Shown here piece by piece: positions 25,471 through 56,817 of a DNA stretch of 64,000 nt. The position numbers and the translations under genes were made by a program. The notes under the pieces were generated by a model that saw only the letters and a list, made by a program, of their open reading frames with translations, ran no database searches and had not been told where the DNA came from. The stretch lies in the sequence record MT811961.1; one strand, 5' to 3'. The stretch's first letter is position 1. Each line of letters begins with the position of its first letter.

Positions 25471-25517
25471 CCTACCTGCCTTCGGGCAGGTAGGTATTCT
25501 TTCTTATTTTTTTTTTT
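25471..25517. terminator. Terminator between convergent genes (probably bidirectional)
   Basis: CCTACCTGCC-TTCG-GGCAGGTAGG with a long T tract on +; the minus-strand operon ends at 25518. Confidence 0.85.
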
Positions 25518-26162
25518 CTAAAATTCTTCGTGTAACACCGTACCATCATGAATGGCATAGTCGGCATAAAACTGCTCAAAGAACCGGTCATTGATATCCT
25601 TGACAATTTCAATTTCGCCAGTGTCTATCTTGTATGATTCCTCAGGCTTGAATGGTTTCTCAGCAAACTCCAGTGTGTCACCATAGAAGAATGTACCTTC
25701 ACCTAACTGTCGGTCACCACCGGAAAGATCAAAGTGTAGATAGTACGTTAGTGTACTTAAAGTATGCCCACCGATGATTTCTGTCCAGTCGTTTCGATTC
25801 CAGTTACCCGAACCAGCACGGTTACGGAAATAGGCACGTCCAGAAAAGTAAACGACGTCCTCATTCGCATATTCAGTTGTATTGTCGAATTGCGGAATCA
25901 GCGCAGTATAAACTTTAACTGGAGATGTACCCAAACCTTCACCGTCACGATATGTGGCCGTATCGCCATTAAGCACAAGTACCCCGTGATCTTCGTTATC
26001 CTCGATAGAGTCGACAAGAAACTCAATACCTTCGCGGTAGTTGTAAACGGCGTTTTCCACATAGCGATGATACATAAAGGAGTTCGTAATGTATAGGTTA
26101 GTCGGGGTGAAAACCACCCCGTTGTAACCCACAACACGAACAATGAATAACTCGTGATGCAT
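25518..26162 (-). CDS. Putative virion appendage accessory protein with a CBM5/12-like segment
   Basis: FDNTTEYANEDVVYFSGRAYF...WNRNDW; TAAGGAG SD; last gene of the minus-strand island. Confidence 0.6.
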   Translation of the reverse strand: MHHELFIVRVVGYNGVVFTPTNLYITNSFMYHRYVENAVYNYREGIEFLVDSIEDNEDHGVLVLNGDTATYRDGEGLGTSPVKVYTALIPQFDNTTEYANEDVVYFSGRAYFRNRAGSGNWNRNDWTEIIGGHTLSTLTYYLHFDLSGGDRQLGEGTFFYGDTLEFAEKPFKPEESYKIDTGEIEIVKDINDRFFEQFYADYAIHDGTVLHEEF

Positions 26163-26171
26163 TTCTACTCC

Positions 26172-26657
26172 TTAAAGTGTATAGCTGTATTCTTGAACAA
26201 AGTCAGCTTCAACAAACAAAGAACCTTGCTCGATGTCGTTTACTGTGCGCAGAACACGCATGTTGCTACCTTCGATCTTGGCTAGGTAAACACCCTTTGG
26301 ATATTGGAAACCGGGTGTATGTAAACCAGCAAAAGGCTTACCATCAATATCCGGAACATAGAACACAAGCCAGGCATTCATATTAGCAAAACCATATCCT
26401 GGATTTACAGGAATGTCCTGAATTGCACGAAAGTACCCTTTGGGTGTTCGGATTTCGTCACCAAACGAATAACTGATATTATTGTTAAACGCCGTATAAG
26501 TATTGACGTCCGGATTGATTGGTGGTTCAGAGTTACGATCAATCAATGCACCTGTTAAATCGATGATGGTGTTGACCACCAGTGCCAAGTCTTTACCTGT
26601 ACTGTTTAACGGGTTTTCTGGAGCATCGGTCGATACGATGTATTGGATATCACTCAT
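26172..26657 (-). CDS. Short paralog of 36682..37677 (putative virion appendage protein)
   Basis: IQYIV...PENPLNSTGKDLA..VNTIIDLTGALID versus IRYLV...PDDPDNSTGRMIADSVNGLIDLVGALED; shared YxxGxEIRT. Confidence 0.75.
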   Translation of the reverse strand: MSDIQYIVSTDAPENPLNSTGKDLALVVNTIIDLTGALIDRNSEPPINPDVNTYTAFNNNISYSFGDEIRTPKGYFRAIQDIPVNPGYGFANMNAWLVFYVPDIDGKPFAGLHTPGFQYPKGVYLAKIEGSNMRVLRTVNDIEQGSLFVEADFVQEYSYTL

Positions 26658-28534
26658 GATGATTTAATCTCCACGACATGCTGTGAAACAAAGCGACGTT
26701 TCTTCCTAAGCGGAATCGTACGTACAAGGACCGTCACAGAAGCTTTGTGTAGCGATACAGCCGTCTTAGGCTTCATCAATACAGTAACGGACTGTTTGTG
26801 TACTCGGTTAACCAGAGACGGACGCAGTACAGCATAAGCAGACTGCTTAAGTACGTTAGGGCCAGTCTTAGGCTTCAGTACCGCATAACCAGATTGCTTA
26901 AGAATATTTGGACCTGACTTAGGTTTCAATACCGCATAAGCTGTCTGTTTCAATACCTTCAGTTCTTCAGCCTTCACCAATACTGCTTCTGAAACCATAT
27001 GCTTGATTGCCGGACCTGGGTCAGGTTTCAAGACTGCTTCCGAAACAATATGTTTTACAGCTGGGCCTGGATCTGGTTTTAGTACGGCTTCCGATACAAG
27101 ATGGTTAACGTATGGACCAGCAGGTTTAGCTTCCAGTACAACCGAGATCGTTTGCTTCTGAAGTTTTAGTTCGGGTGGCAAAGGTTCCAATACTACGGAA
27201 ACGGTTTGCTTCTGGAGTTTCAGATTGGCTGGTTTAGGTTGAACAACAACCGAGACAGCTTGCTTCTGAAGTGTGACTTCGGGTGGTGGTGGCTTGATAA
27301 CAACCGATACTGCTTGCTTCTGCAATGTTGCTTTTGCCAAGACAGGTGTAAGTATCGCCTCGCGCATCAAGTGATGAACATGAGGACCAGCATCAGGTGC
27401 CAGTATTGTTTCACGCATCAAGTGATGTACGTGTGGACCATTCGTCTGTACTACCTCTGTAACACTTAGACCTTCGAAATTGATTTCGTATTGTGTATCA
27501 ACTGTAACGATCTTGTCATCATGGACAATGTGTTCGTCAGTACCTAAGTGGAAGCCACCTTGGTAATTGATCACAGAAGGATCTGGGTCGTTGGTCCATT
27601 CATGAGCAGTGCCATCGCCATAGCGAATGCGGTTTTCTGTTTGCGTCCAATTGCTACCAGCATTAGTAATACCAGCTACAGTAAGGTCGTCAGACGGTAC
27701 AGTACCACGGAAAGCATAGTGTAGCGCTGTCACAGTACCAAAACCGGACACACCATCCCAGGATGAACCACTCCAGGTCTTCTCGGTATATGGGGCCACA
27801 GCTCGACGATAACGTAAGTTACTGAAAGCGTCATACTGGATGTACAAAGCACGTTGACTGTTGTCGTTTCTGTCTGTCCAAGCAGAGCCATCATAAACAC
27901 GAATCGAACCATCTGCTTTAGTAATGGCAATTTCAGTATCGCCTGTACCAGCAATACAGTCTACAGTAGAAACATCTTCGCCATTGGTTACGTCGGTCCA
28001 AACATCATCACGTGTAACACGATAGATCTTATTGCCAGCAGAATCAACCACAAGGGCACTGTCTGACGTTGCATCAATACCAAGTGCACTAATGGCACTG
28101 ATGCCAGGATCATTGGCCATCTGTACCCAGGCGTTTTGTTCATAAACATAAAGACTGGTATTAGCCGACATCCAGATGTTACGTGAGCCAGCAGTTGCAT
28201 GCTCAATGCCAGTGGTTGGCACTGCAATACTAGAATCAACCCAGACGTTTGTACCGCCTGTTTGATTGGCCACCAAACCAACTACTTCCCCTGTTGTACC
28301 TGCCACAGTTATTGTTTTCGTAACTGTTGACGTGGTACTAGTCAGGCCAGTAAACTCAAGTGTGTCGTAAGTAAGACCAAAATCAAGGTTCTTAACTTCC
28401 ACGTTAATTGACGTGGCACCCGTGGTAGTGGCACCTAAAGTAATCTCTAAGTCTACTGGTCCGTCTTTTTGAAAGACATGCAGTATGGCAATTGTACCTG
28501 AATCACCAAGAATTTCTGGTGTTGTTGTACTCAT
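26654..28534 (-). CDS. Putative scaffold protein: N-terminal beta-sandwich/propeller plus a C-terminal array of 16-18-aa repeats
   Basis: Trp-spaced propeller-like blades in the middle; about 15 tandem repeats from residue 366 to the end; AAGGAG SD. Confidence 0.7.
   Translation of the reverse strand: MSTTTPEILGDSGTIAILHVFQKDGPVDLEITLGATTTGATSINVEVKNLDFGLTYDTLEFTGLTSTTSTVTKTITVAGTTGEVVGLVANQTGGTNVWVDSSIAVPTTGIEHATAGSRNIWMSANTSLYVYEQNAWVQMANDPGISAISALGIDATSDSALVVDSAGNKIYRVTRDDVWTDVTNGEDVSTVDCIAGTGDTEIAITKADGSIRVYDGSAWTDRNDNSQRALYIQYDAFSNLRYRRAVAPYTEKTWSGSSWDGVSGFGTVTALHYAFRGTVPSDDLTVAGITNAGSNWTQTENRIRYGDGTAHEWTNDPDPSVINYQGGFHLGTDEHIVHDDKIVTVDTQYEINFEGLSVTEVVQTNGPHVHHLMRETILAPDAGPHVHHLMREAILTPVLAKATLQKQAVSVVIKPPPPEVTLQKQAVSVVVQPKPANLKLQKQTVSVVLEPLPPELKLQKQTISVVLEAKPAGPYVNHLVSEAVLKPDPGPAVKHIVSEAVLKPDPGPAIKHMVSEAVLVKAEELKVLKQTAYAVLKPKSGPNILKQSGYAVLKPKTGPNVLKQSAYAVLRPSLVNRVHKQSVTVLMKPKTAVSLHKASVTVLVRTIPLRKKRRFVSQHVVEIKSS
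26660..27439 (-). repeat. Tandem coding repeats (about 51-54 nt, 16-18 aa)
   Basis: GPHVHHLMRExILxP x2; LQKQxVSVVxxP x4; GPxVxHxVSEAVL x3; LKQxxYAVLxP x3; HK(Q/A)SVTVL x2; terminal FVSQHVVEI. Confidence 0.9.
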
Positions 28535-28544
28535 GCGTTACTCC

Positions 28545-29822
28545 TTATAGTGCAACAAATGTCATTGCCATGTTGATGCCGGCGGAAATAACCATATTGT
28601 AGTTGGTATCATCCGTAGCGGCCACATAGCCGTTTCCATCCCATGTTACTTTGCCTTTGAACTCTTTAGATAAGTCGTCCAACCAAAGCCATAGGTAAAG
28701 ATCATCGGCCGTTCCGTATTTGACAGTATCGTCGCCTTTATTGAAAACTCGTACGGTACGTGCACCTGAGTCAACCTTGATACTCATCGTGGTGCCACCC
28801 GTCCAGTCTGCGCCGCCTGAGTCAAGACCATAACCTCCGCTTACTGCCGCAGAAGAGAAAGCTTGATAGTGTACATTCTCGACTGAAAGAGTAGAGGCAT
28901 TGATCACCGCAGGTGTCCAGACGGAACCATCGGTCGGGTTTACATCAGAAACAAACGTTGTTGGATTGTCTTCTGAGTCAGCAGTAACCGCAATAAAGCC
29001 AACGAAGTGGCGATTGCCATTCTCTTCCAAGATCTGTGCAAGATAAGGCGAATCAGTAGCACCAGACGTATCACTGATTGTAGAAAAGTTAACAGCCGCA
29101 ATATTCATATCGGTAGGTACAGCGGTAAAGTCAAACTTCGCAGTTGAGCCGACACCTGTGGAACTTACACCACCTTGGTCTGGAGCCAAAGTTTGCAGCT
29201 CAGCAATATCACCAGCAAAACCATTCAGAACCATAGAAGCAGGTGCTTCTGATTGGATACGCCAACCACGAGTGTCTGTTGTTGAAATAACACCCTCGGT
29301 GAGGTTCAGGTTAGTCGGAATTGCAAATGTGCAACTCAATAGGTTACAGTCAGCAGGCCATGCGAAATCGCCAGATGCGATCTGTGTACCATCTGCGAAA
29401 AGACGCCAACCATCAGTCTTCTTAAACTCGATATCGATGTCGATCCATTTATTAAGATCGAATGGAGTAAAGGTAACTGTTGAGCCAGAGCCACCACCAA
29501 TACTTGCGCCGTAACAAGAGCCACGCTGTAAGTTAATGGACATGCGCTTAGTCTTTGTTTCATCCCAGTAGAAGATACGCAGACCAGCGTCGCCAGTCCA
29601 CTTGAGACGAGTGTGTTGCCACATACCTTCGTCAGTAGAACAGTGAGCTTGTTGGAAGTACACACGGGCATCACTAGCACTTGACCAGTCGTTTAATGCC
29701 CAGTTAGTCATCGTATCCTCTGCGGATACATCTACCACTTTTTGACGAACCGAATCTGGTCCGAACGAATCGCCAGCAGGAATCGTGATTGAACCCGGAC
29801 TAATTGTTGCTAGAATAGTCAT
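28545..29822 (-). CDS. Paralog 6 of the tandem lectin/ConA-like putative receptor-binding family
   Basis: LTEGVISTTDTRGWRIQSEAPA and VNPTDGSVWTPAVINA core motifs. Confidence 0.7.
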   Translation of the reverse strand: MTILATISPGSITIPAGDSFGPDSVRQKVVDVSAEDTMTNWALNDWSSASDARVYFQQAHCSTDEGMWQHTRLKWTGDAGLRIFYWDETKTKRMSINLQRGSCYGASIGGGSGSTVTFTPFDLNKWIDIDIEFKKTDGWRLFADGTQIASGDFAWPADCNLLSCTFAIPTNLNLTEGVISTTDTRGWRIQSEAPASMVLNGFAGDIAELQTLAPDQGGVSSTGVGSTAKFDFTAVPTDMNIAAVNFSTISDTSGATDSPYLAQILEENGNRHFVGFIAVTADSEDNPTTFVSDVNPTDGSVWTPAVINASTLSVENVHYQAFSSAAVSGGYGLDSGGADWTGGTTMSIKVDSGARTVRVFNKGDDTVKYGTADDLYLWLWLDDLSKEFKGKVTWDGNGYVAATDDTNYNMVISAGINMAMTFVAL

Positions 29823-29834
29823 TTGTTTTCCCCA

Positions 29835-29872
29835 AAAAGGAGAGGGAGGATTACTCCCTCAGTTAAACTTAA
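29835..29872 (-). repeat. Intergenic repeat copy 1 (37/38 nt identical to 31183..31220) with hairpin
   Basis: Plus strand AAAAGGAGAGGGAGGATTACTCCCTCAGTTAAACTTAA; GAGGGAG/CTCCCTC stem. Confidence 0.9.
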
Positions 29873-31170
29873 AGTGGCAGGATGTACATTTTCATCTGCA
29901 TACCGGAAGCAGATATTACATCAAAGTCATCACTGCTCAGTCCAGACTTGTAGCCACCCGTAGTATCATCCCATGTTAGGACGCGGTTAACGGTAGGTTG
30001 TCCTGCTACATCTCGGCGAGTGTAATAAACATGAATCTTGTCCGATGTGCCCCACTTACGATTGGTGTCGGCATCACAGAAGATCCACAGGTTACGTGCA
30101 CTATAAGCATGCTGTAGTTCAATAGCACCACCGCCATCCCATTCGCCGCCTTTGACAAATTGAGCCGCACCACCAGTACCATAGACACCACTTGTAATCT
30201 GCGCAGTGTTGAAGTAGTGTTCAACTGGGTTGATTACTGTGATCTCTCGTTCTGATAAATCAGCAGTCGACCAGTTGGAACCATCCGATGGTTTGGTCTC
30301 ATGCACAAACGAGTTAGGGACATTTTCACCATCACTGTCTGTACTATGCAAACCTAGCAGGTTGCCGTCTAAGATATAAGCAAGCATTGGTGATTCTGGA
30401 GTACCATTTGTTTCGGCGATGGTATTGATTGTATGACCAGCTACTTTGTAACCACCAGGGACAACAGGCATCTTGGCCACAAACTCTGCACCGGCACCGC
30501 CAGAACTCAAACCATCTTCGGTCAGACCAGGCGTTTGAATGTTGACTACATCGCCACTAAACGTACTAGAAACAAGCGAGGCTGGTACTTCTGAAGCGAC
30601 ACGCCAGTTTCGAGTATCTTCGTTGGCGACAACCATTTCTGTTATCTCGCCACCTTGGATTCGGAATTGGAAAGCACTGGAGTCAGTACCCAGTATGTAA
30701 CTTCCAGAGTAATCATGCTCCAAGCTACCGTTGATGTAAACCTTGCCAGAACCCATTTCTAAATCAAAATCAAACCAGTCAGAACCCTCGGCAGGGAATG
30801 TACCACTAAAGCTCTGGTTATTCTGCTGTGTCTGGTTTCGCGTATGCATCATAAACCATGGGGTAACCTGTAGCCCCCAGTAGTCTTTATAGGTAGAGGA
30901 ATAGCCGCTTGGCTGGCCATAAAACTCAACGCCTATCTCAAAAGAACTAACTGTGCGCTTGACGCGCGCATGGAACCACAACGTACTCGTTGGAGTGGAT
31001 TTCATTGATAAGCGACTATGTGCCTTAGAGTTACAATCTGGAAACTTCCAGTTTGTCATTGTGTCGTCGGCCGTAGCATCTACCGCAAGTGTACGAATGT
31101 CATTGGCTGAATAAGCTTGACCAGCAGTAACCGGCAGTGAAGCAGGGTTAACTGTTAAAAGAATTGACAT
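29869..31170 (-). CDS. Paralog 5 of the tandem family
   Basis: ITEMVVANEDTRNWRVASEVPA and ETKPSDGSNWSTADL. Confidence 0.7.
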   Translation of the reverse strand: MSILLTVNPASLPVTAGQAYSANDIRTLAVDATADDTMTNWKFPDCNSKAHSRLSMKSTPTSTLWFHARVKRTVSSFEIGVEFYGQPSGYSSTYKDYWGLQVTPWFMMHTRNQTQQNNQSFSGTFPAEGSDWFDFDLEMGSGKVYINGSLEHDYSGSYILGTDSSAFQFRIQGGEITEMVVANEDTRNWRVASEVPASLVSSTFSGDVVNIQTPGLTEDGLSSGGAGAEFVAKMPVVPGGYKVAGHTINTIAETNGTPESPMLAYILDGNLLGLHSTDSDGENVPNSFVHETKPSDGSNWSTADLSEREITVINPVEHYFNTAQITSGVYGTGGAAQFVKGGEWDGGGAIELQHAYSARNLWIFCDADTNRKWGTSDKIHVYYTRRDVAGQPTVNRVLTWDDTTGGYKSGLSSDDFDVISASGMQMKMYILPL

Positions 31171-31182
31171 TTTGTTTTCTCC

Positions 31183-31220
31183 AAAAGGAGAGGGAGGTTT
31201 ACTCCCTCAGTTAAACTTAA
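31183..31220 (-). repeat. Intergenic repeat copy 2 with hairpin
   Basis: Plus strand AAAAGGAGAGGGAGGTTTACTCCCTCAGTTAAACTTAA. Confidence 0.9.
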
Positions 31221-32539
31221 GCTGCTCGGACAAAAATCCAAAGACCAGTTGTAGCGTTAGCTGACATCATGGAACGAACCTTTGCTGCTTCTGGATCGCC
31301 ATTGGTCGTTTCCCAGTATTCGCGGTCACCGATAGTACCACCATTGCGCTTCGCTTTGAAAGAGAAGATCTCGTCTGTATCGGCACCCTTGATGAGCACC
31401 ACGATGTTGTCACCCCATGCACCGACGGTTTCTGTGGTGGCCTGAATCACTACTTTGTCGCTTTGTTCGTAAAAGTATTCGAACTGAGTATAGCCGGCAG
31501 CCGGTTTCTTGTCGTAGGCTTCTGAGAAGCCAGAAGCTTTCTTGATGCCATACAATGAACCACTTGCACCAAAGTCACGAATACGCATGTCCCACAAGAA
31601 AGACTCTGCACCAAACTCAAGAGCATCGATTTCCGCCATTGTCCAAGCATTGCCTGTCAGTGGGTTAACTTCCATAATGTCTAATTGCGGAGCTAGAGCA
31701 CCGTCGGCATCAGGGGCAGATGCATTTGGACCGTAGCCAACATCCGTGCCATTCGTAACCATGTGGCGGAATATAGGAGCAGCAGGATTACCAGCAGTGT
31801 TAACAACAGAGCCAAGTACCAATGAATGAACTTGTAGTCCAGCGGCGTTTGCATCTGTACTAAAGTCAGAGTATTGGAAAGACTGTTTCATTGGACCATC
31901 AGCGCTTACAGAGTCCGCAGTAAGGTCTTCAGTGTTAATGCTATCTACAATACCACCAAACTCATCGAAGCTACCGGCTGCTTCTGGATCTAGCTTGGCT
32001 AGTCGCCAACCACGAGTATCTTCGTCAGCAATGATTACTTCACTCACGTCTGGTTGGTGTGTCACCAGTGCAATGCTATTAAACGTTGCATTGACGATCG
32101 AGAAAGTAGTATCATGAATTTGGTTTCCGTCCACGTAGAATGCCACGCGGTTATTGTAGAAATGGACGTCTATGTCCGCAACTGCCGCAGTCTGTGCTGG
32201 TGCACTTGCCGTACCGCCGCCAGGCTGCTGGGTATTAAGGAAGAATTGATCTCCACCACCAGAACCGATACGCAGTTTGTACGTACCGTCATTGGCAACC
32301 AAACTAAACTGTGCCGTTGCATTGAGTGAAGCACCGTTATTGGCATAGCGGAAGTGGATCCAAATATCTTTAGGAACATTTTCAGCAAACTTAACTGTTT
32401 GACCTGATTCAAATTCTACTTTGTCAAAAGAACCAGGTAGGTTAGATGCCTCTAGGCGTGTACGTGGGTCACCAGAACCCAGGTAGTCAGCAGAAGCAAC
32501 GATAGGTGTAACATCACCTAGGATAGCTAAAACAGCCAT
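31217..32539 (-). CDS. Paralog 4 of the tandem family
   Basis: VSEVIIADEDTRGWRLAKLDPEA and EVNPLTGNAWTMAEIDALEFG. Confidence 0.7.
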   Translation of the reverse strand: MAVLAILGDVTPIVASADYLGSGDPRTRLEASNLPGSFDKVEFESGQTVKFAENVPKDIWIHFRYANNGASLNATAQFSLVANDGTYKLRIGSGGGDQFFLNTQQPGGGTASAPAQTAAVADIDVHFYNNRVAFYVDGNQIHDTTFSIVNATFNSIALVTHQPDVSEVIIADEDTRGWRLAKLDPEAAGSFDEFGGIVDSINTEDLTADSVSADGPMKQSFQYSDFSTDANAAGLQVHSLVLGSVVNTAGNPAAPIFRHMVTNGTDVGYGPNASAPDADGALAPQLDIMEVNPLTGNAWTMAEIDALEFGAESFLWDMRIRDFGASGSLYGIKKASGFSEAYDKKPAAGYTQFEYFYEQSDKVVIQATTETVGAWGDNIVVLIKGADTDEIFSFKAKRNGGTIGDREYWETTNGDPEAAKVRSMMSANATTGLWIFVRAA

Positions 32540-32551
32540 AAATTAAATCTC

Positions 32552-33949
32552 CTAATAACCTTCAATCATTACTTCAAGAACTTGGCCTGCGCGATCTTTC
32601 AGCCATGAGTAGAAATAGCCGCCGTCACGACGATAGTCCTTGGCTGTATTATTCCAAGGAATCTGTTCGGTCTGGATATTTCCATCTGTCTCGCGGAAAT
32701 GCAATCGAACGCCATTTGGACCATGAGCCCACTTGCGGCCATCGTTGGTTTTAAAAATACCACGACCGTAGTTGTTTTGCCATTCCACTGATTCAATGAA
32801 TCCACCCGGAATACCATTCTCGTCGTACCATGTACCGCCAGAAATAAGATTGTTCAAGGTAGTACTATCTTTGCGGTAACCTTGGTAGTTGTTATTGCTA
32901 TTGGCAGTAGTGAAGGTAATGTGTGGAATGAAGTCTACATCCGCAACTGTTCCAGCAAACTCTACGCCCGCTTCCAGTGTATTTACTTCGGCTACTGTCC
33001 ATGCCTTGCCTGTCTTAGGATTGACTTCATGGAAAGCACTCAGAGCACGACCAGGGGACGTAGCAGTGATCTGCTTAGGCGCGAGTTCTTTGTGAACCTC
33101 GCCATCCGTCTTGATTGTCATCTGGGCATATTCTAGTTCAGATGCAGCCGACTTGCTTACCAATGCTTTCACATCGATCGCGCGAATACTGAGGTCAGAA
33201 TTAGAGGCAAAGGTGTTGTGTACATCAGTAAGACTGAAAAGATTCGCACCAGCTACTTCTGTTTCCATAGCTGCTTCATCCAGGCCGATCTCAGTAATGT
33301 CTGAGATATCGCCGCTCATATTGCCCGATGCCAAAGCGTCCGGCGTCAGAGTCAATAGACGCATACCTAGTGTAGGCTCGTCTTCCGTGATGATCAGTTC
33401 ACTAATTGGAATCGTACTGCCGCCATCAATCCAGACATAGAGCATTTTATAACTAGACTTGGCACTGTTACTCGTACCTGTCTTAATTAGAGCACCGTTA
33501 CAATATACTTCGAAGTAGCCCGTATTCGAATCAACATGTAGGTCGATTTCGGTTTGTGCAGCTTTGTCGTATTTGCCTGTTTCGTAACAGTATTCGCCAG
33601 CTGCCTGACACTGAATACGGCCATCGCTATAACCAACCGTGATTACTGTATTCGTATTGGAGCTTGGTGACGATGGGTGTTCTCCGATCTGTAACTTCAC
33701 ATAACGCGAGGTATCATTGCGTTGATTGAAACGAAAATGCACCCAGTATTTCTTGGTGTCACCTGGAGGAGGACTGACTTGAAATGGACTGAAGTTATAG
33801 TTCGGTCTTGGGGTTGCACGACGGTTTGCTTCTGGATCAAATGCGTCCGTATTCGTATCAACTTGTACACGAACGTCACTGCTAGTAAAGTAATAGTTAG
33901 GATCCGTTACCGTACCAGACAGTTCATTCTGCATAAATAAAATTGCCAT
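32552..33949 (-). CDS. Paralog 3 of the tandem family
   Basis: ISELIITEDEPTLGMRLLTLTPDA and EVNPKTGKAWTVAEVNTLEAG. Confidence 0.7.
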   Translation of the reverse strand: MAILFMQNELSGTVTDPNYYFTSSDVRVQVDTNTDAFDPEANRRATPRPNYNFSPFQVSPPPGDTKKYWVHFRFNQRNDTSRYVKLQIGEHPSSPSSNTNTVITVGYSDGRIQCQAAGEYCYETGKYDKAAQTEIDLHVDSNTGYFEVYCNGALIKTGTSNSAKSSYKMLYVWIDGGSTIPISELIITEDEPTLGMRLLTLTPDALASGNMSGDISDITEIGLDEAAMETEVAGANLFSLTDVHNTFASNSDLSIRAIDVKALVSKSAASELEYAQMTIKTDGEVHKELAPKQITATSPGRALSAFHEVNPKTGKAWTVAEVNTLEAGVEFAGTVADVDFIPHITFTTANSNNNYQGYRKDSTTLNNLISGGTWYDENGIPGGFIESVEWQNNYGRGIFKTNDGRKWAHGPNGVRLHFRETDGNIQTEQIPWNNTAKDYRRDGGYFYSWLKDRAGQVLEVMIEGY

Positions 33950-33963
33950 TATGGGCTCCTGTG

Positions 33964-35322
33964 TTATTCTACGTAAACGCTTACTGCTTTACCGGCACGG
34001 GCATGGAACCAGTTAACCAAGGTAGCGTCAGTAACTCGATAGTCACCCGAGTACGGAAATACTTTCGTAGTCTCTGCGCCGTCTTCGTCAACAAAGCGGA
34101 AAGTAATAGAATCCTTACCGTCTACTTTGTTGCCGCCGCCAGTACCAAATGCCGCGACAACACGGCCGTCGCTCTTATCGCCATAAAGAAAATAAGGACG
34201 ATCATGACCAGTTCTGTCTGTACTCGTAATCGAAGCAACTAAATCGCCGGTAGGTACGCCGTAAGCATAGTAACCAGCAATATTTGTATCATCATAACGA
34301 ACATCAAAACGAAGGACGAATAGTGGCGGTGTTTCTAAATTCACGCCAAACTCAGCAGCTTTGATTTCTGCTTCTGTCCATGCTGCGCCCGTGTTAGGGT
34401 TTACTTCGTAGAGTTCATTTAAAGAACCTCGACCACTTACAGTGTCTAGTAAACGACCGACAACTGGGCTGTGTTCATCCGCATCCGTTTTCAAGACATT
34501 ACGCATATAGTTTTGTTCCATGCCAGCTTCAGCTGATGCGACACTAGACACAGCGACTGCTTTAATGTCGTATGTACTAAAGTCGATTGCAGCATCCGGA
34601 TCAGTATAAGCAAACGTGTGTTTACCTGCCCCCGTAGACGTCACGCCGTCTGGGTTAAGTGACAATTCACTAACCGTACTCACATCGCCAGTAAAGTCAG
34701 TATGTGTGCCGTTTGCTTCTGGAACAAGAGAGATAACGCGCATGCCAATGGTGATTTCACCTTCGGTAACGATTACTTCTGAAGCACTGCGTCCAGCAGA
34801 TACTTTACGAATCTGAACAGAATCCCAAAGACTTGGTTTGAAACTAGAAACAATTGCCGAAGTACCAGAGGCTTCATTAACGCCATTGACATAAAAAGCA
34901 AAAGCGCCAGTGTCTGTATTCAGCATTACGTCTACGTGGTGGTTTCCATCTGCGACTGCTTTAGCGCCGATCTCTGTGCCACTCAGGTTCTTAATGCGAA
35001 CCTCGCCTGAACCACCTTCAATACGAAAGCCCTCTGCATTCGGAACACCGTCATAGCCAAAGTTGATGAGGCCATTGGAGTACCCATTCTGAACGTAGAT
35101 CATGGCATGGATCCACAGAACCGTAGCGTCACTCGATGCACCCGTCATCTTCATGCTGGCATATGCAAAGTTTCGGCTCTCTACTTCTACGCGACCACGA
35201 GAAAACACCGGGTCAAAGCCATCGCCCGTAGCTACCAAGCCACGACGCGGGTCACGTGCTGTGGTTTCGTCGTTTACAGAAACTTCACCATTGGCTTCGT
35301 TTTGAATAAATAAGAAAGTCAT
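33964..35322 (-). CDS. Paralog 2 of the tandem family
   Basis: ASEVIVTEGEITIGMRVISLVPEA and EVNPNTGAAWTEAEIKAAEFG. Confidence 0.7.
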   Translation of the reverse strand: MTFLFIQNEANGEVSVNDETTARDPRRGLVATGDGFDPVFSRGRVEVESRNFAYASMKMTGASSDATVLWIHAMIYVQNGYSNGLINFGYDGVPNAEGFRIEGGSGEVRIKNLSGTEIGAKAVADGNHHVDVMLNTDTGAFAFYVNGVNEASGTSAIVSSFKPSLWDSVQIRKVSAGRSASEVIVTEGEITIGMRVISLVPEANGTHTDFTGDVSTVSELSLNPDGVTSTGAGKHTFAYTDPDAAIDFSTYDIKAVAVSSVASAEAGMEQNYMRNVLKTDADEHSPVVGRLLDTVSGRGSLNELYEVNPNTGAAWTEAEIKAAEFGVNLETPPLFVLRFDVRYDDTNIAGYYAYGVPTGDLVASITSTDRTGHDRPYFLYGDKSDGRVVAAFGTGGGNKVDGKDSITFRFVDEDGAETTKVFPYSGDYRVTDATLVNWFHARAGKAVSVYVE

Positions 35323-35332
35323 TTCTTACTCC

Positions 35333-36682
35333 TTAAAATGTTTCTACCCAAGCATTCAGTACTTGACCAACACTCGCATTGAACTTGGCTTCTAGTGTAT
35401 CGTTACGACTAGACTTAAAGCTGCCGCCAAAACCAGTATTGTAGGACATGGTGTTCGTAACAAAGTAGGTGCCGTCTTCAAACAACAGATGAATACGTGC
35501 GCTCGTACTGCCATGCCAACCGCCACTAGCGGTCTTTGGACTCAGTAACAGATAATTATTGTCTACGGAGTAATAGAAAGCATCGACGATTGATTCGTCC
35601 TTGCCGCCCAGTAGTGTACCGAACGTACTGCCTTCTGTACGCCAACCGCGTAGACTACCATCGCTTGCAATACGAATCTTCAAGTCAGGCTGACCAACTG
35701 CCACACCGGCTTCCAAAGCATTGATCTCAGACACAGTCCAAGCTGCTCCCGTTTCTGGGTTTGTTGTCATGACTGTATTGAGTGACTTCGAATCACTAGT
35801 AGTGTCAGACACAAGGAAGTCATATGGTGCATGTATATTGCCATTAACCCGCACTGCGTTTTGAACAAACTTGTCGACGAAAGTCTCATCCGCAGTAGAC
35901 ACAGTAGATACGGTCACTGCTGCAATGTTGTACTGACTCATATCGATACCTGCATCAATGTCAGTATAGTCAAACATAAAGTTACCAGCACCAATAGTAG
36001 TCATACCGTCGTTGCTGAGTGATACTTCGTTAACTGTCGCAACAGCACCTTCAAGGCTATTGTCTGATGCAGCTGCCTCTGGGGCAAGTGTAGCGACACG
36101 CATGCCGATCGTAGGCTTCGCTTCCGCAATGATCATTTCGGTAAACGAGGTACCAGCTGCACTACGTAGCCCAGACTTCATATAACAGTCTAGCCCCATG
36201 TCAACAATCCATGAGTGCGTACCACTGCCTTTAGATAGACCATCTTGAAATATTTCAAAGGCACCCGTGCCGAAGTTGATTTTAACGTCAAAATCCGATT
36301 GGTTGCTTACATTAGTCAGGTTCACTGAGGCGTCACGTCCAGCAAAGTCGACAATTCTCGCTCTGCTGTTTTCTATGCGCAATTCAAAATGTCGACCTGT
36401 ACCAGCTGGTGTCGTAAATGCCCATGCCGAAGAGCCAGAAGACAAAACAAGAGAGCGGAAATGAAACCAAATATCCGAAGAGGTATTTGCAGGTGGTTCG
36501 GTTACAAACCAACCTTTACCTAGGGCATGGTTGGAAGCCTGTGAGTGTCCACGACTAAACTTCTCATCGCGAAACTGAGGATAGATTGGATTCAACACCA
36601 CACGTTGGTCATAATCTGTACTACCTACTTCGGCTTCTGTTGTAAAACCATGAGACTCATTAAAGACGAAAAGAAAACTCAT
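35333..36682 (-). CDS. Paralog 1 of the tandem family
   Basis: FTEMIIAEAKPTIGMRVATLAPEA and TNPETGAAWTVSEINALEAG. Confidence 0.7.
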   Translation of the reverse strand: MSFLFVFNESHGFTTEAEVGSTDYDQRVVLNPIYPQFRDEKFSRGHSQASNHALGKGWFVTEPPANTSSDIWFHFRSLVLSSGSSAWAFTTPAGTGRHFELRIENSRARIVDFAGRDASVNLTNVSNQSDFDVKINFGTGAFEIFQDGLSKGSGTHSWIVDMGLDCYMKSGLRSAAGTSFTEMIIAEAKPTIGMRVATLAPEAAASDNSLEGAVATVNEVSLSNDGMTTIGAGNFMFDYTDIDAGIDMSQYNIAAVTVSTVSTADETFVDKFVQNAVRVNGNIHAPYDFLVSDTTSDSKSLNTVMTTNPETGAAWTVSEINALEAGVAVGQPDLKIRIASDGSLRGWRTEGSTFGTLLGGKDESIVDAFYYSVDNNYLLLSPKTASGGWHGSTSARIHLLFEDGTYFVTNTMSYNTGFGGSFKSSRNDTLEAKFNASVGQVLNAWVETF

Positions 36683-37677
36683 TACATCAAGCCCTCCAAA
36701 GTAATGGAAATGTTAGCCAGTGTTTTGTCGGCTACGCCGTTTTGTTTTAGTGTGATCGTATCACCTGTTGTTACTGAAACGTCACCGGTCGAAACGAATG
36801 TTCCTGTAGTGTCGCCAGTAGCAAAATTGATTGTGCCGATCTGGGTTGCACCATGCAGGACAACAAGAGAGGTATCTGCCTCGGCTGCTGTGGCCGCAAC
36901 TGCAACTGAGTTAGGGAAGTTTTGCTTAAAGACAAAGTCTTGTGTAATAACTTCGATAAAGATCTCTTCATCATCATCGGTGGTGTCTTGAATAAAACAC
37001 TTGATATTAAAGAGAGTTGTTGTGTTTACTTGGAAAACCGAATCCCACTGAGTCGGATCAAATGGACCTGCCGTTTCGATCTTGTCCTTCGATACATATA
37101 CACCGTCGTTGTATGTTACGAAAACACCAGCTTCATAGGTTGCAGTATCATCAAAAGTACCAGACCAGTCTTGCATACCACCACGGTCATACGTAGCGTC
37201 TACTTGCCACTGGGCAGGATCAAATGGTGTACCTGGATCGATGTCTTCCAGCGCACGCATAACAATCACATTGTCCGGCGTTAGACGTACTGTTGCTGTG
37301 TTGGCAAAGTATCCGTTTACTTCATCATAGATGCCGCCATAAGCAGCACCGCCGTCAGCAGGCATGTGGGTTAAAGCCCAAAAGTTACGGTTGGTCAAAC
37401 TAATGTTGCTGTTGGCAGGTACGTTGGAAATACAACGGAAATAACCAAAAGCAGTGCGGATCTCAGATCCTGCCAAGTATGGGTAATCAGAGTTATGTAC
37501 TTTGCTTACCACCACAGAAGGGTCTGGATCTGGCCAACTGGAATTATCTTCCAGTGCACCAACCAAGTCAATCAGACCATTCACCGAGTCTGCGATCATG
37601 CGGCCGGTTGAGTTATCTGGATCGTCTGGTTCTTTTTTAGCCACCAAGTAACGAATTGGAAATGATGTATTCCGCAT
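36682..37677 (-). CDS. Putative virion appendage protein with CBM5/12-like repeats
   Basis: Start moved to ATG 37677 (AGGAG SD); FDDTATYEAGVFVTYNDGVYVS...FDPTQW and a second FDPAQW; first gene of the minus-strand island. Confidence 0.65.
   Translation of the reverse strand: MRNTSFPIRYLVAKKEPDDPDNSTGRMIADSVNGLIDLVGALEDNSSWPDPDPSVVVSKVHNSDYPYLAGSEIRTAFGYFRCISNVPANSNISLTNRNFWALTHMPADGGAAYGGIYDEVNGYFANTATVRLTPDNVIVMRALEDIDPGTPFDPAQWQVDATYDRGGMQDWSGTFDDTATYEAGVFVTYNDGVYVSKDKIETAGPFDPTQWDSVFQVNTTTLFNIKCFIQDTTDDDEEIFIEVITQDFVFKQNFPNSVAVAATAAEADTSLVVLHGATQIGTINFATGDTTGTFVSTGDVSVTTGDTITLKQNGVADKTLANISITLEGLM

Positions 37678-54873: not shown

Positions 54874-56817
<1,944 letters not shown>

Follow-up and report, generated by a model that had tools for sequence, protein, structure and literature searches.

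The attachment of many receptor-binding proteins to a single virus particle is understood for only few model phages. In CBA120, G7C and PhiK64-1, several receptor-binding proteins encoded in a row are joined into one branched appendage. In chaperone-usher pili, a strand of one chain completes the fold of another (donor-strand complementation), and in cellulosomes one scaffoldin bears blocks of docking sites of differing specificity. Fibre shafts of the adenovirus, reovirus and PRD1 type are triple beta-spirals with a repeat period of about 15. The fiber-dock loop of the SU10 nozzle presents three pseudo-threefold residues of one chain to a homotrimeric tail fibre (PMC9509320). Here we describe an array of short peptide repeats that forms the C-terminal tail of a 626-amino-acid (aa) protein of Vibrio phage vB_pir03 (MT811961.1; pir03 in the following), a 286-kb contractile-tailed jumbo phage of Vibrio harveyi. 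The window analysed is a stretch of 64,000 nucleotides (nt) of this genome, in which each position equals the record position minus 186000. The repeat motif and a lectin-like protein family encoded beside it travel together across very different phages, neither of them being named, and the placement and copy numbers of their genes point to a simple rule of attachment, one that may be readable from sequence. A limited search of the literature found no description of such an arrangement of the array and the lectin-like family.

The repeat-bearing open reading frame (ORF; 26654-28534, minus strand; QNI21189.1) is intact, without internal stops or frameshifts. It belongs to a ten-gene minus-strand operon lying amid plus-strand genes. 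A gene for a 331-aa protein comes first, followed by those for six paralogs (425-465 aa each); behind the repeat ORF are the genes of two smaller proteins, of 161 and then 214 aa, and the operon ends with a hairpin. All genes around the repeat ORF are annotated as 'hypothetical protein' in the record, and no mention of them was found in the searched passages of the pir03 genome paper. Tentatively, we favour the reading that the tail is a polyvalent basic docking thread for acidic lectin-like receptor-binding proteins, with about three units for each presumably trimeric partner, and regard it as falling just short of probable. Each unit of 17 or 18 residues would consist of a short strand-forming motif (one hydrophobic position, a basic one that never varies, and three hydrophobic ones in a row) and a Pro-rich spacer; without a fold of its own, it would be taken up as a strand by the partner protein. 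The candidate partners are the products of the genes immediately upstream, acidic lectin-like proteins of the NPxTGxAWT family (about 330 aa). One partner, presumably a homotrimer, would bind about three units of the same class, so that the single chain could offer it a pseudo-threefold dock, and different classes would serve different paralogs, giving a choice of partners. The terminal basic cluster and hydrophobic strand may act as an anchor for the whole. The pir03 thread has an N-terminal domain of its own, probably beta-rich, fused to it, and would join a number of different receptor-binding proteins in a single appendage carried by the virion.

Such a thread would share the logic of the SU10 dock, in which three spaced pseudo-repeats of one chain correspond to the unit triplet and single paralog whose contact we infer here. 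The two differ in that the SU10 dock consists of three Trp residues, 8-10 positions apart, within a loop of a large nozzle protein and serves one partner, whereas here strand motifs of 15-20 residues form long multi-class arrays, often a whole protein, and there is no sequence relation between them. The likeness to pili and scaffoldins is a functional analogy only, the proteins and organisms being unrelated; moreover, all strands would here sit on one chain, and the docking elements would be linear motifs, not folded cohesin modules. The receptor-binding proteins of CBA120, G7C and PhiK64-1 differ in bearing folded N-terminal adaptor domains, in place of the separate repeat thread found here.

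A first-pass annotation of the window had reported about 15 short repeats at 26654-27439, arranged in contiguous sequence classes and sharing one register, and this picture stands: the coordinates were right and all quoted peptides are present in the order given. The repeats can be read on the minus strand only, the plus-strand reading of the same segment being riddled with stops. Fourteen regular units begin at residues 369, 386, 404, 422, 440, 458, 476, 493, 510, 527, 544, 561, 578 and 595, spaced by exactly 17 or 18 residues with no exception, and the last unit is in register at residue 612. Self-similarity was restricted to residues ~361-600, as judged by pattern search and dot-matrix, and at the DNA level Tandem Repeats Finder detected three classes, with a period of 54 nt in class B and of 51 nt in classes C and D. 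In the common register of the 15 units, column 3 is hydrophobic in 14 and column 5 basic in all; columns 10-12 are hydrophobic in 13-15 units, and column 14 is Pro in 11. Column shares were computed likewise for 309 non-identical units across all arrays described below, and these share the register, with a basic or polar residue following the first hydrophobic one. The units fall into contiguous classes of 2, 4, 3, 3, 2 and 1, with a mean identity of 62% within classes vs 22% between them; with five labelled classes of sizes 2, 4, 3, 3 and 2, only 120 of 25,225,200 orderings (4.8e-6) are fully sorted. The tail contains 10.7% Pro, 15.7% Val and 11.5% Lys, and no Trp, and its net charge is +23, as opposed to -28 for the rest of the 626-aa protein. 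Chance or low complexity as a source of the repeats was ruled out by the self-similarity, the class identities, the scoring of units and the survey presented below. Each of the two class A units (27332-27439) holds a His-x-His-His run; paired His residues may bind iron in fibres (PMC9509320).

The block pattern had also been taken as a sign of serial local duplication followed by divergence. This view needs correcting, as the copies within a class are not recent. Within-class DNA identity is ~64%, and codons are identical in 73 of 146 within-class pairs of codons for the same residue, vs 52 expected with fully randomised synonymous sites. DNA identity being low and synonymous sites largely randomised, the within-class copies are old and the class-specific residues are under selection, which thus maintains the block pattern beyond what serial duplication left behind. 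A block pattern of this kind was seen again in distant relatives.

Searching 1.84 billion representatives with the tail (phmmer) yielded 10 non-self proteins at E up to 1e-3, all of which consist of units like those of the tail, in many cases arranged in blocks. Discoidin-like or CBM-like (carbohydrate-binding module) N-terminal domains are present in some, and others are proteins of 71-105 aa with three or four units, including P0005 (105 aa), whose signal-peptide-like N-terminus precedes four units. Class D is the class nearest to the units of most metagenomic relatives. Vibrio phage vB_VpaM_sm033 (sm033) has two tandem copies of the module, each comprising a stand-alone thread (206 and 207 aa) of 12 units and nothing else, placed after three paralogs; the tail matches both threads (blastp, 6e-16 and 9e-14). 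In word-index protein searches, an sm033 thread had no match; the complete 626-aa protein found only itself, and paralog p440 found itself and a single distant match. Each sm033 module (L002 3154-20978, both copies) consists of genes for a fibre-like protein, three paralogs, the thread, a 160-aa protein and a 200-aa protein, the 200-aa gene being present a third time upstream. For homologues detected with the tail as sole query, eight metagenomic contexts were inspected, and in each a gene of the paralog family is directly upstream. These contexts represent sipho-, podo- and myophage-like backgrounds, with tail modules containing DUF2460, Phage_BR0599 and Phage-tail_3, and one podophage-like locus. 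The association of the repeat with this family, which the first-pass annotation had proposed to check, was seen in every case, none of the eight homologues lying away from it.

A wider survey covered 122 loci with 9520 ORFs, comprising 80 loci from IMG/VR and 27 from metagenomes, gathered via the paralog family, plus cultured phages. Such short units could not be delimited by hmmsearch; they were scored with a position-specific score matrix and thresholds derived from shuffled sequences. With a first matrix, derived from the tail plus its relatives, 11 of 8024 ORFs were picked out, and every one was the next gene behind a paralog. A broadened matrix, trained also on ORFs following paralog genes, marked 49 of 9520, and 44 of these 49 lie directly downstream of a paralog-family gene, against a background of 4.9%; the binomial P of 3e-52 is nominal only, because the loci share ancestry and the matrix was refined on the same downstream ORFs. 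Four of the five exceptions are placed one gene further downstream. In pir03 itself, six paralogs directly precede the repeat ORF.

The nearly constant position behind the partner gene could also be expected if the same units bound the paralogs only transiently, gathering three chains as an assembly template outside the virion, in the manner of the tail-fibre assembly proteins encoded just downstream of fibre genes. The occurrence of minimal three-unit proteins and the opposite charges of the tail and the proposed partners would suit such a template too. On the other hand, many arrays share a chain with large domains of lectin-like, Ig-like or fibre type, an indication that these domains are delivered to the particle, and neither Pfam nor PHROGs gave a match to a known family of tail-fibre assembly chaperones, so that only the downstream gene position agrees. 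We consider a template of this kind, a variant hard to tell apart from the docking thread, quite improbable.

The number of units rises with the number of paralogs (Spearman 0.73, p 8e-7, n=34 complete non-redundant loci), the median being 3, 6 and 9 units for one, two and three paralogs. Once the filter on minimum unit number was lifted, 34 of the 58 loci with a single paralog had no units, and three was the commonest non-zero number. A tail that bound no particular protein, acting as a flexible basic spacer or sticking to surfaces such as anionic host polysaccharide, would account for the high isoelectric point (pI), the abundance of Lys and Pro, and the low confidence of structure prediction reported below. 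It would not account for the exact register, for class-specific residues kept while synonymous sites are largely randomised, or for the tight linkage of the gene to one protein family across unrelated phage types; besides, many relatives are not similarly basic, having, for example, units of the Thr-Gln/Glu type. A spacer of this sort therefore seems very improbable.

The first ~330 residues of the six pir03 paralogs form one family, which includes the Asn-Pro...Trp-Thr motif and corresponds to phrog_6368. This PHROG matches five of the six paralogs (E 1.7e-30 to 3e-8), the 425-aa paralog matching no PHROG, and a hidden Markov model of the family recognises all six (1e-78 to 2e-90). The net charge of every paralog is between -20 and -28, opposite to that of the tail (+23). 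There is a hint that the first paralog domain is a generic ConA-like or galectin-like jelly roll: galectin was matched by the family profile in the PDB at E 0.03, and Foldseek agrees, on a low-confidence AlphaFold2 (AF2) model of a paralog with a mean predicted local distance difference test (pLDDT) of 40.5. Many further Foldseek matches to the jelly-roll fold carried no added meaning. A trimeric partner is suggested because three units prevail and because the family domain ends a J-like Phage-tail_3 protein, of which it makes up the C-terminal 280 of 1204 residues (L006 2170-5784). J is trimeric in lambda. The family domain was also observed inside other large proteins (L033, L038, L048 and L071). 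In N4-like roseophages (L124 3623-4600; L087 4626-5612) a family member annotated as 'virion protein' or 'N4 gp53-like' is followed by no array; the latter label was rejected, N4 gp53 being a monomeric tail plug and the family profile matching no such PDB chain.

The smallest forms of the array are proteins of 64-75 aa that consist of three units and a short tail, each encoded after a single paralog; examples are L021 (64 aa), P0008 (73 aa), P0010 (71 aa) and the protein of Loktanella phage pCB2051-A (74 aa). An ending of the terminal-unit type, a basic cluster followed by a hydrophobic strand, closes not only the pir03 tail but also both sm033 threads and several small array proteins. At the other extreme, arrays stand at either end of otherwise unrelated proteins, with discoidin-like, CBM-like or Ig-like domains or as fibres of ~1000 aa or more, and several proteins of ~500 to 1000 aa have only one or two units, which open the chain. 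This placement would fit the behaviour of a portable docking cassette. In one case (L016 10965-11366) three units are joined to an Ig domain resembling that of Hoc (phrog_4069 among other matches), showing that the cassette can carry a small decoration-type domain.

The alternative to be taken most seriously is a self-assembling fibre shaft, in which the units would stack into a beta rod, for example a trimeric beta-spiral or a beta-helix, the length of which is set by duplication, and the lectin-like neighbours would be other fibre components. Like the repeats of triple beta-spirals, those described here are short and of similar length, follow a fixed hydrophobic pattern with Pro or Gly at the turn, and occur in viral attachment proteins. 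The strict period of 17/18, the Pro or Gly kept at unit ends, the hydrophobic residues on both faces of columns 10-12, and the arrays opening several fibre-looking proteins of ~1000 aa or more all speak for a rod. However, the period differs from that of triple beta-spirals, the arrays are built of distinct class blocks, and no PDB chain, solved shafts included, matches the tail at E up to 10. A shaft would have nothing to display in the three-unit proteins of 64-75 aa, and in pir03, as in several relatives, no distal domain comes after the array, which is the last part of the chain. Neither such minimal proteins nor a unit number rising with neighbouring genes are properties of a shaft; a rod gives no reason for the latter, and selected blocks of distinct classes would be needless in a uniform one. 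These minimal forms and the survey suit a portable docking cassette better, and we regard a shaft as unlikely. If it were true, the repeats would represent a new class of fibre repeat, its structure still unsolved.

The AF2 monomer model of the 626-aa protein, based on an 11-row alignment, had a mean pLDDT of 38.6 overall; over the tail the values were 25-45, and hardly any regular secondary structure was predicted there. The expectation of the first-pass annotation that the tail would show no confident autonomous fold was thus borne out, but as a weak negative, from 11 sequences and a monomer with no oligomer modelled. A self-folding beta-solenoid found no support either, there being no Pfam repeat match and no confident monomer solenoid, again a weak result from a shallow alignment. 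Monomer prediction is blind to trimeric shafts, and low AF2 confidence is no argument against them. In the N-terminal region a beta-sandwich was predicted with moderate confidence at about residues 14-90; the possibility that this region is a seventh paralog was ruled out (hhalign probability 0.6%). No Pfam family matches the 626-aa protein, nor does any PHROG at E 0.01, and the scanned sm033 thread is likewise without a PHROG at this threshold. Four array relatives (L061, L052, L033 and L030), which are of a more distant Thr-Gln type, match phrog_13560, a PHROG of 69 positions; the pir03 protein does not.

Several observations weigh against the docking thread. The proposed contact is deduced from gene arrangement, and the models, covering monomers only, do not address it; since both AF2 models are of low confidence, the missing fold is weak evidence, and a structure packing regularly on itself could also explain the strict 17/18 period. 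The rule of three is far from strict. Three elements, as in a dock of the SU10 type, are commonest after a single paralog, but 1, 2 and 4-7 units also occur there and one such locus has 18; some arrays are far above three units per paralog, with 18-25 units for 1-4 paralogs, and pir03 has 15 units for six paralogs, or 2.5 each, in classes of 2, 4, 3, 3, 2 and 1. The family often occurs without an array, as in the 34 single-paralog loci mentioned above, the N4-like roseophages and VpV262. We dropped the claim of one class per paralog, as the class count shifts with the identity cut-off, and divergence of units did not significantly track divergence of paralogs (rho 0.45, p 0.08). Finally, the loci are not phylogenetically independent. 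The suggestion of the first-pass annotation that the units are extended strands needing a partner gains from the synteny, from the relation between unit and paralog numbers and from the opposite charges; the need for a partner itself we infer.

A more general form of the docking thread, in which one thread strings several different receptor-binding trimers by class-specific triplets, the thread sequence fixes which trimers are attached and in what order, and the principle is common to sipho-, podo- and jumbo myophages, is conceivable but rather doubtful. Both gene families are already present as unnamed PHROG clusters, phrog_13560 for array relatives and phrog_6368 and phrog_2448 on the paralog side, with no function and no mutual link recorded. 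If the docking thread were correct, two large sets of 'hypothetical' tail genes would become recognisable to annotators, the make-up of multi-receptor appendages could be predicted from the genome, and structural biologists would have a defined complex to work on.

Table 1. Features of the pir03 repeat module and its operon, in window positions.
Feature	Position	Strand	Remarks
Repeat tail	26654..27439	-	Residues 366-626 + stop codon; 15 units; period 17/18 aa; net charge +23; pI 10.3
Class A	27332..27439	-	2 units; residues 366-401; His-rich; Gly-Pro linkers
Class B	27116..27331	-	4 units; residues 402-473; 18-aa period; Pro-rich linkers; DNA period 54 nt
Class C	26963..27115	-	3 units; residues 474-524; 17-aa period; DNA period 51 nt
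Class D	26810..26962	-	3 units; residues 525-575; 17-aa period; DNA period 51 nt
Class E	26708..26809	-	2 units; residues 576-609
Terminal unit	26657..26707	-	Residues 610-626; basic cluster, then hydrophobic strand at extreme C-terminus
Non-repeat N-terminal region of the 626-aa ORF	27440..28534	-	Residues 1-365; acidic, net -28
Paralog 6	28545..29822	-	425 aa; NPxTGxAWT family (phrog_6368 type); C-terminal extension
Paralog 5	29869..31170	-	433 aa
Paralog 4	31217..32539	-	440 aa; first domain ConA-like or galectin-like in appearance
Paralog 3	32552..33949	-	465 aa
Paralog 2	33964..35322	-	452 aa
Paralog 1	35333..36682	-	449 aa; most variable module protein between pir03 and C-ZP2022
First operon gene	36682..37677	-	331 aa as annotated; C-terminal part matches tail-fibre PHROGs
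161-aa protein gene	26172..26657	-	Homologues come after both sm033 threads
214-aa protein gene, last of operon	25518..26162	-	Homologues in both sm033 modules
Bidirectional terminator-like hairpin	25471..25494	.	Ends the minus-strand operon

The stop codon of the repeat ORF and the start codon of the 161-aa gene overlap by 4 nt (26654-26657), which suggests that translation of the two may be coupled. An N-terminal domain of ~150 aa is common to the 161-aa protein and the first operon protein (36682-37677; blastp 9e-26), and both sm033 modules are flanked by a pair of these two types. In its C-terminal part, the first operon protein matches a gene located upstream of the paralogs in the siphophage-like L005, the L004 homologue of which occupies the same position. 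Searching the IMG/VR loci with the 161-aa protein, as a single sequence and as an alignment, returned no relatives. Near-identical stem-loops (29842-29860 and 31190-31208, minus strand) lie in the two 46-nt gaps after paralogs 4 and 5.

Elsewhere in the window, an NAD-dependent DNA ligase is encoded at 54880-56817 on the plus strand (phrog_3869, E 6e-183); few of the genes flanking it have a PHROG match, and these look non-structural. No tRNA gene was found in the window. Phage C-ZP2022 is 99% identical to pir03 and is recorded from another Vibrio host. Comparison of the two shows 34 residue differences in paralog 1, most of them within the first 330, 12 in the first operon protein, 1-7 in each of the other module proteins, and 2 in the repeat tail.

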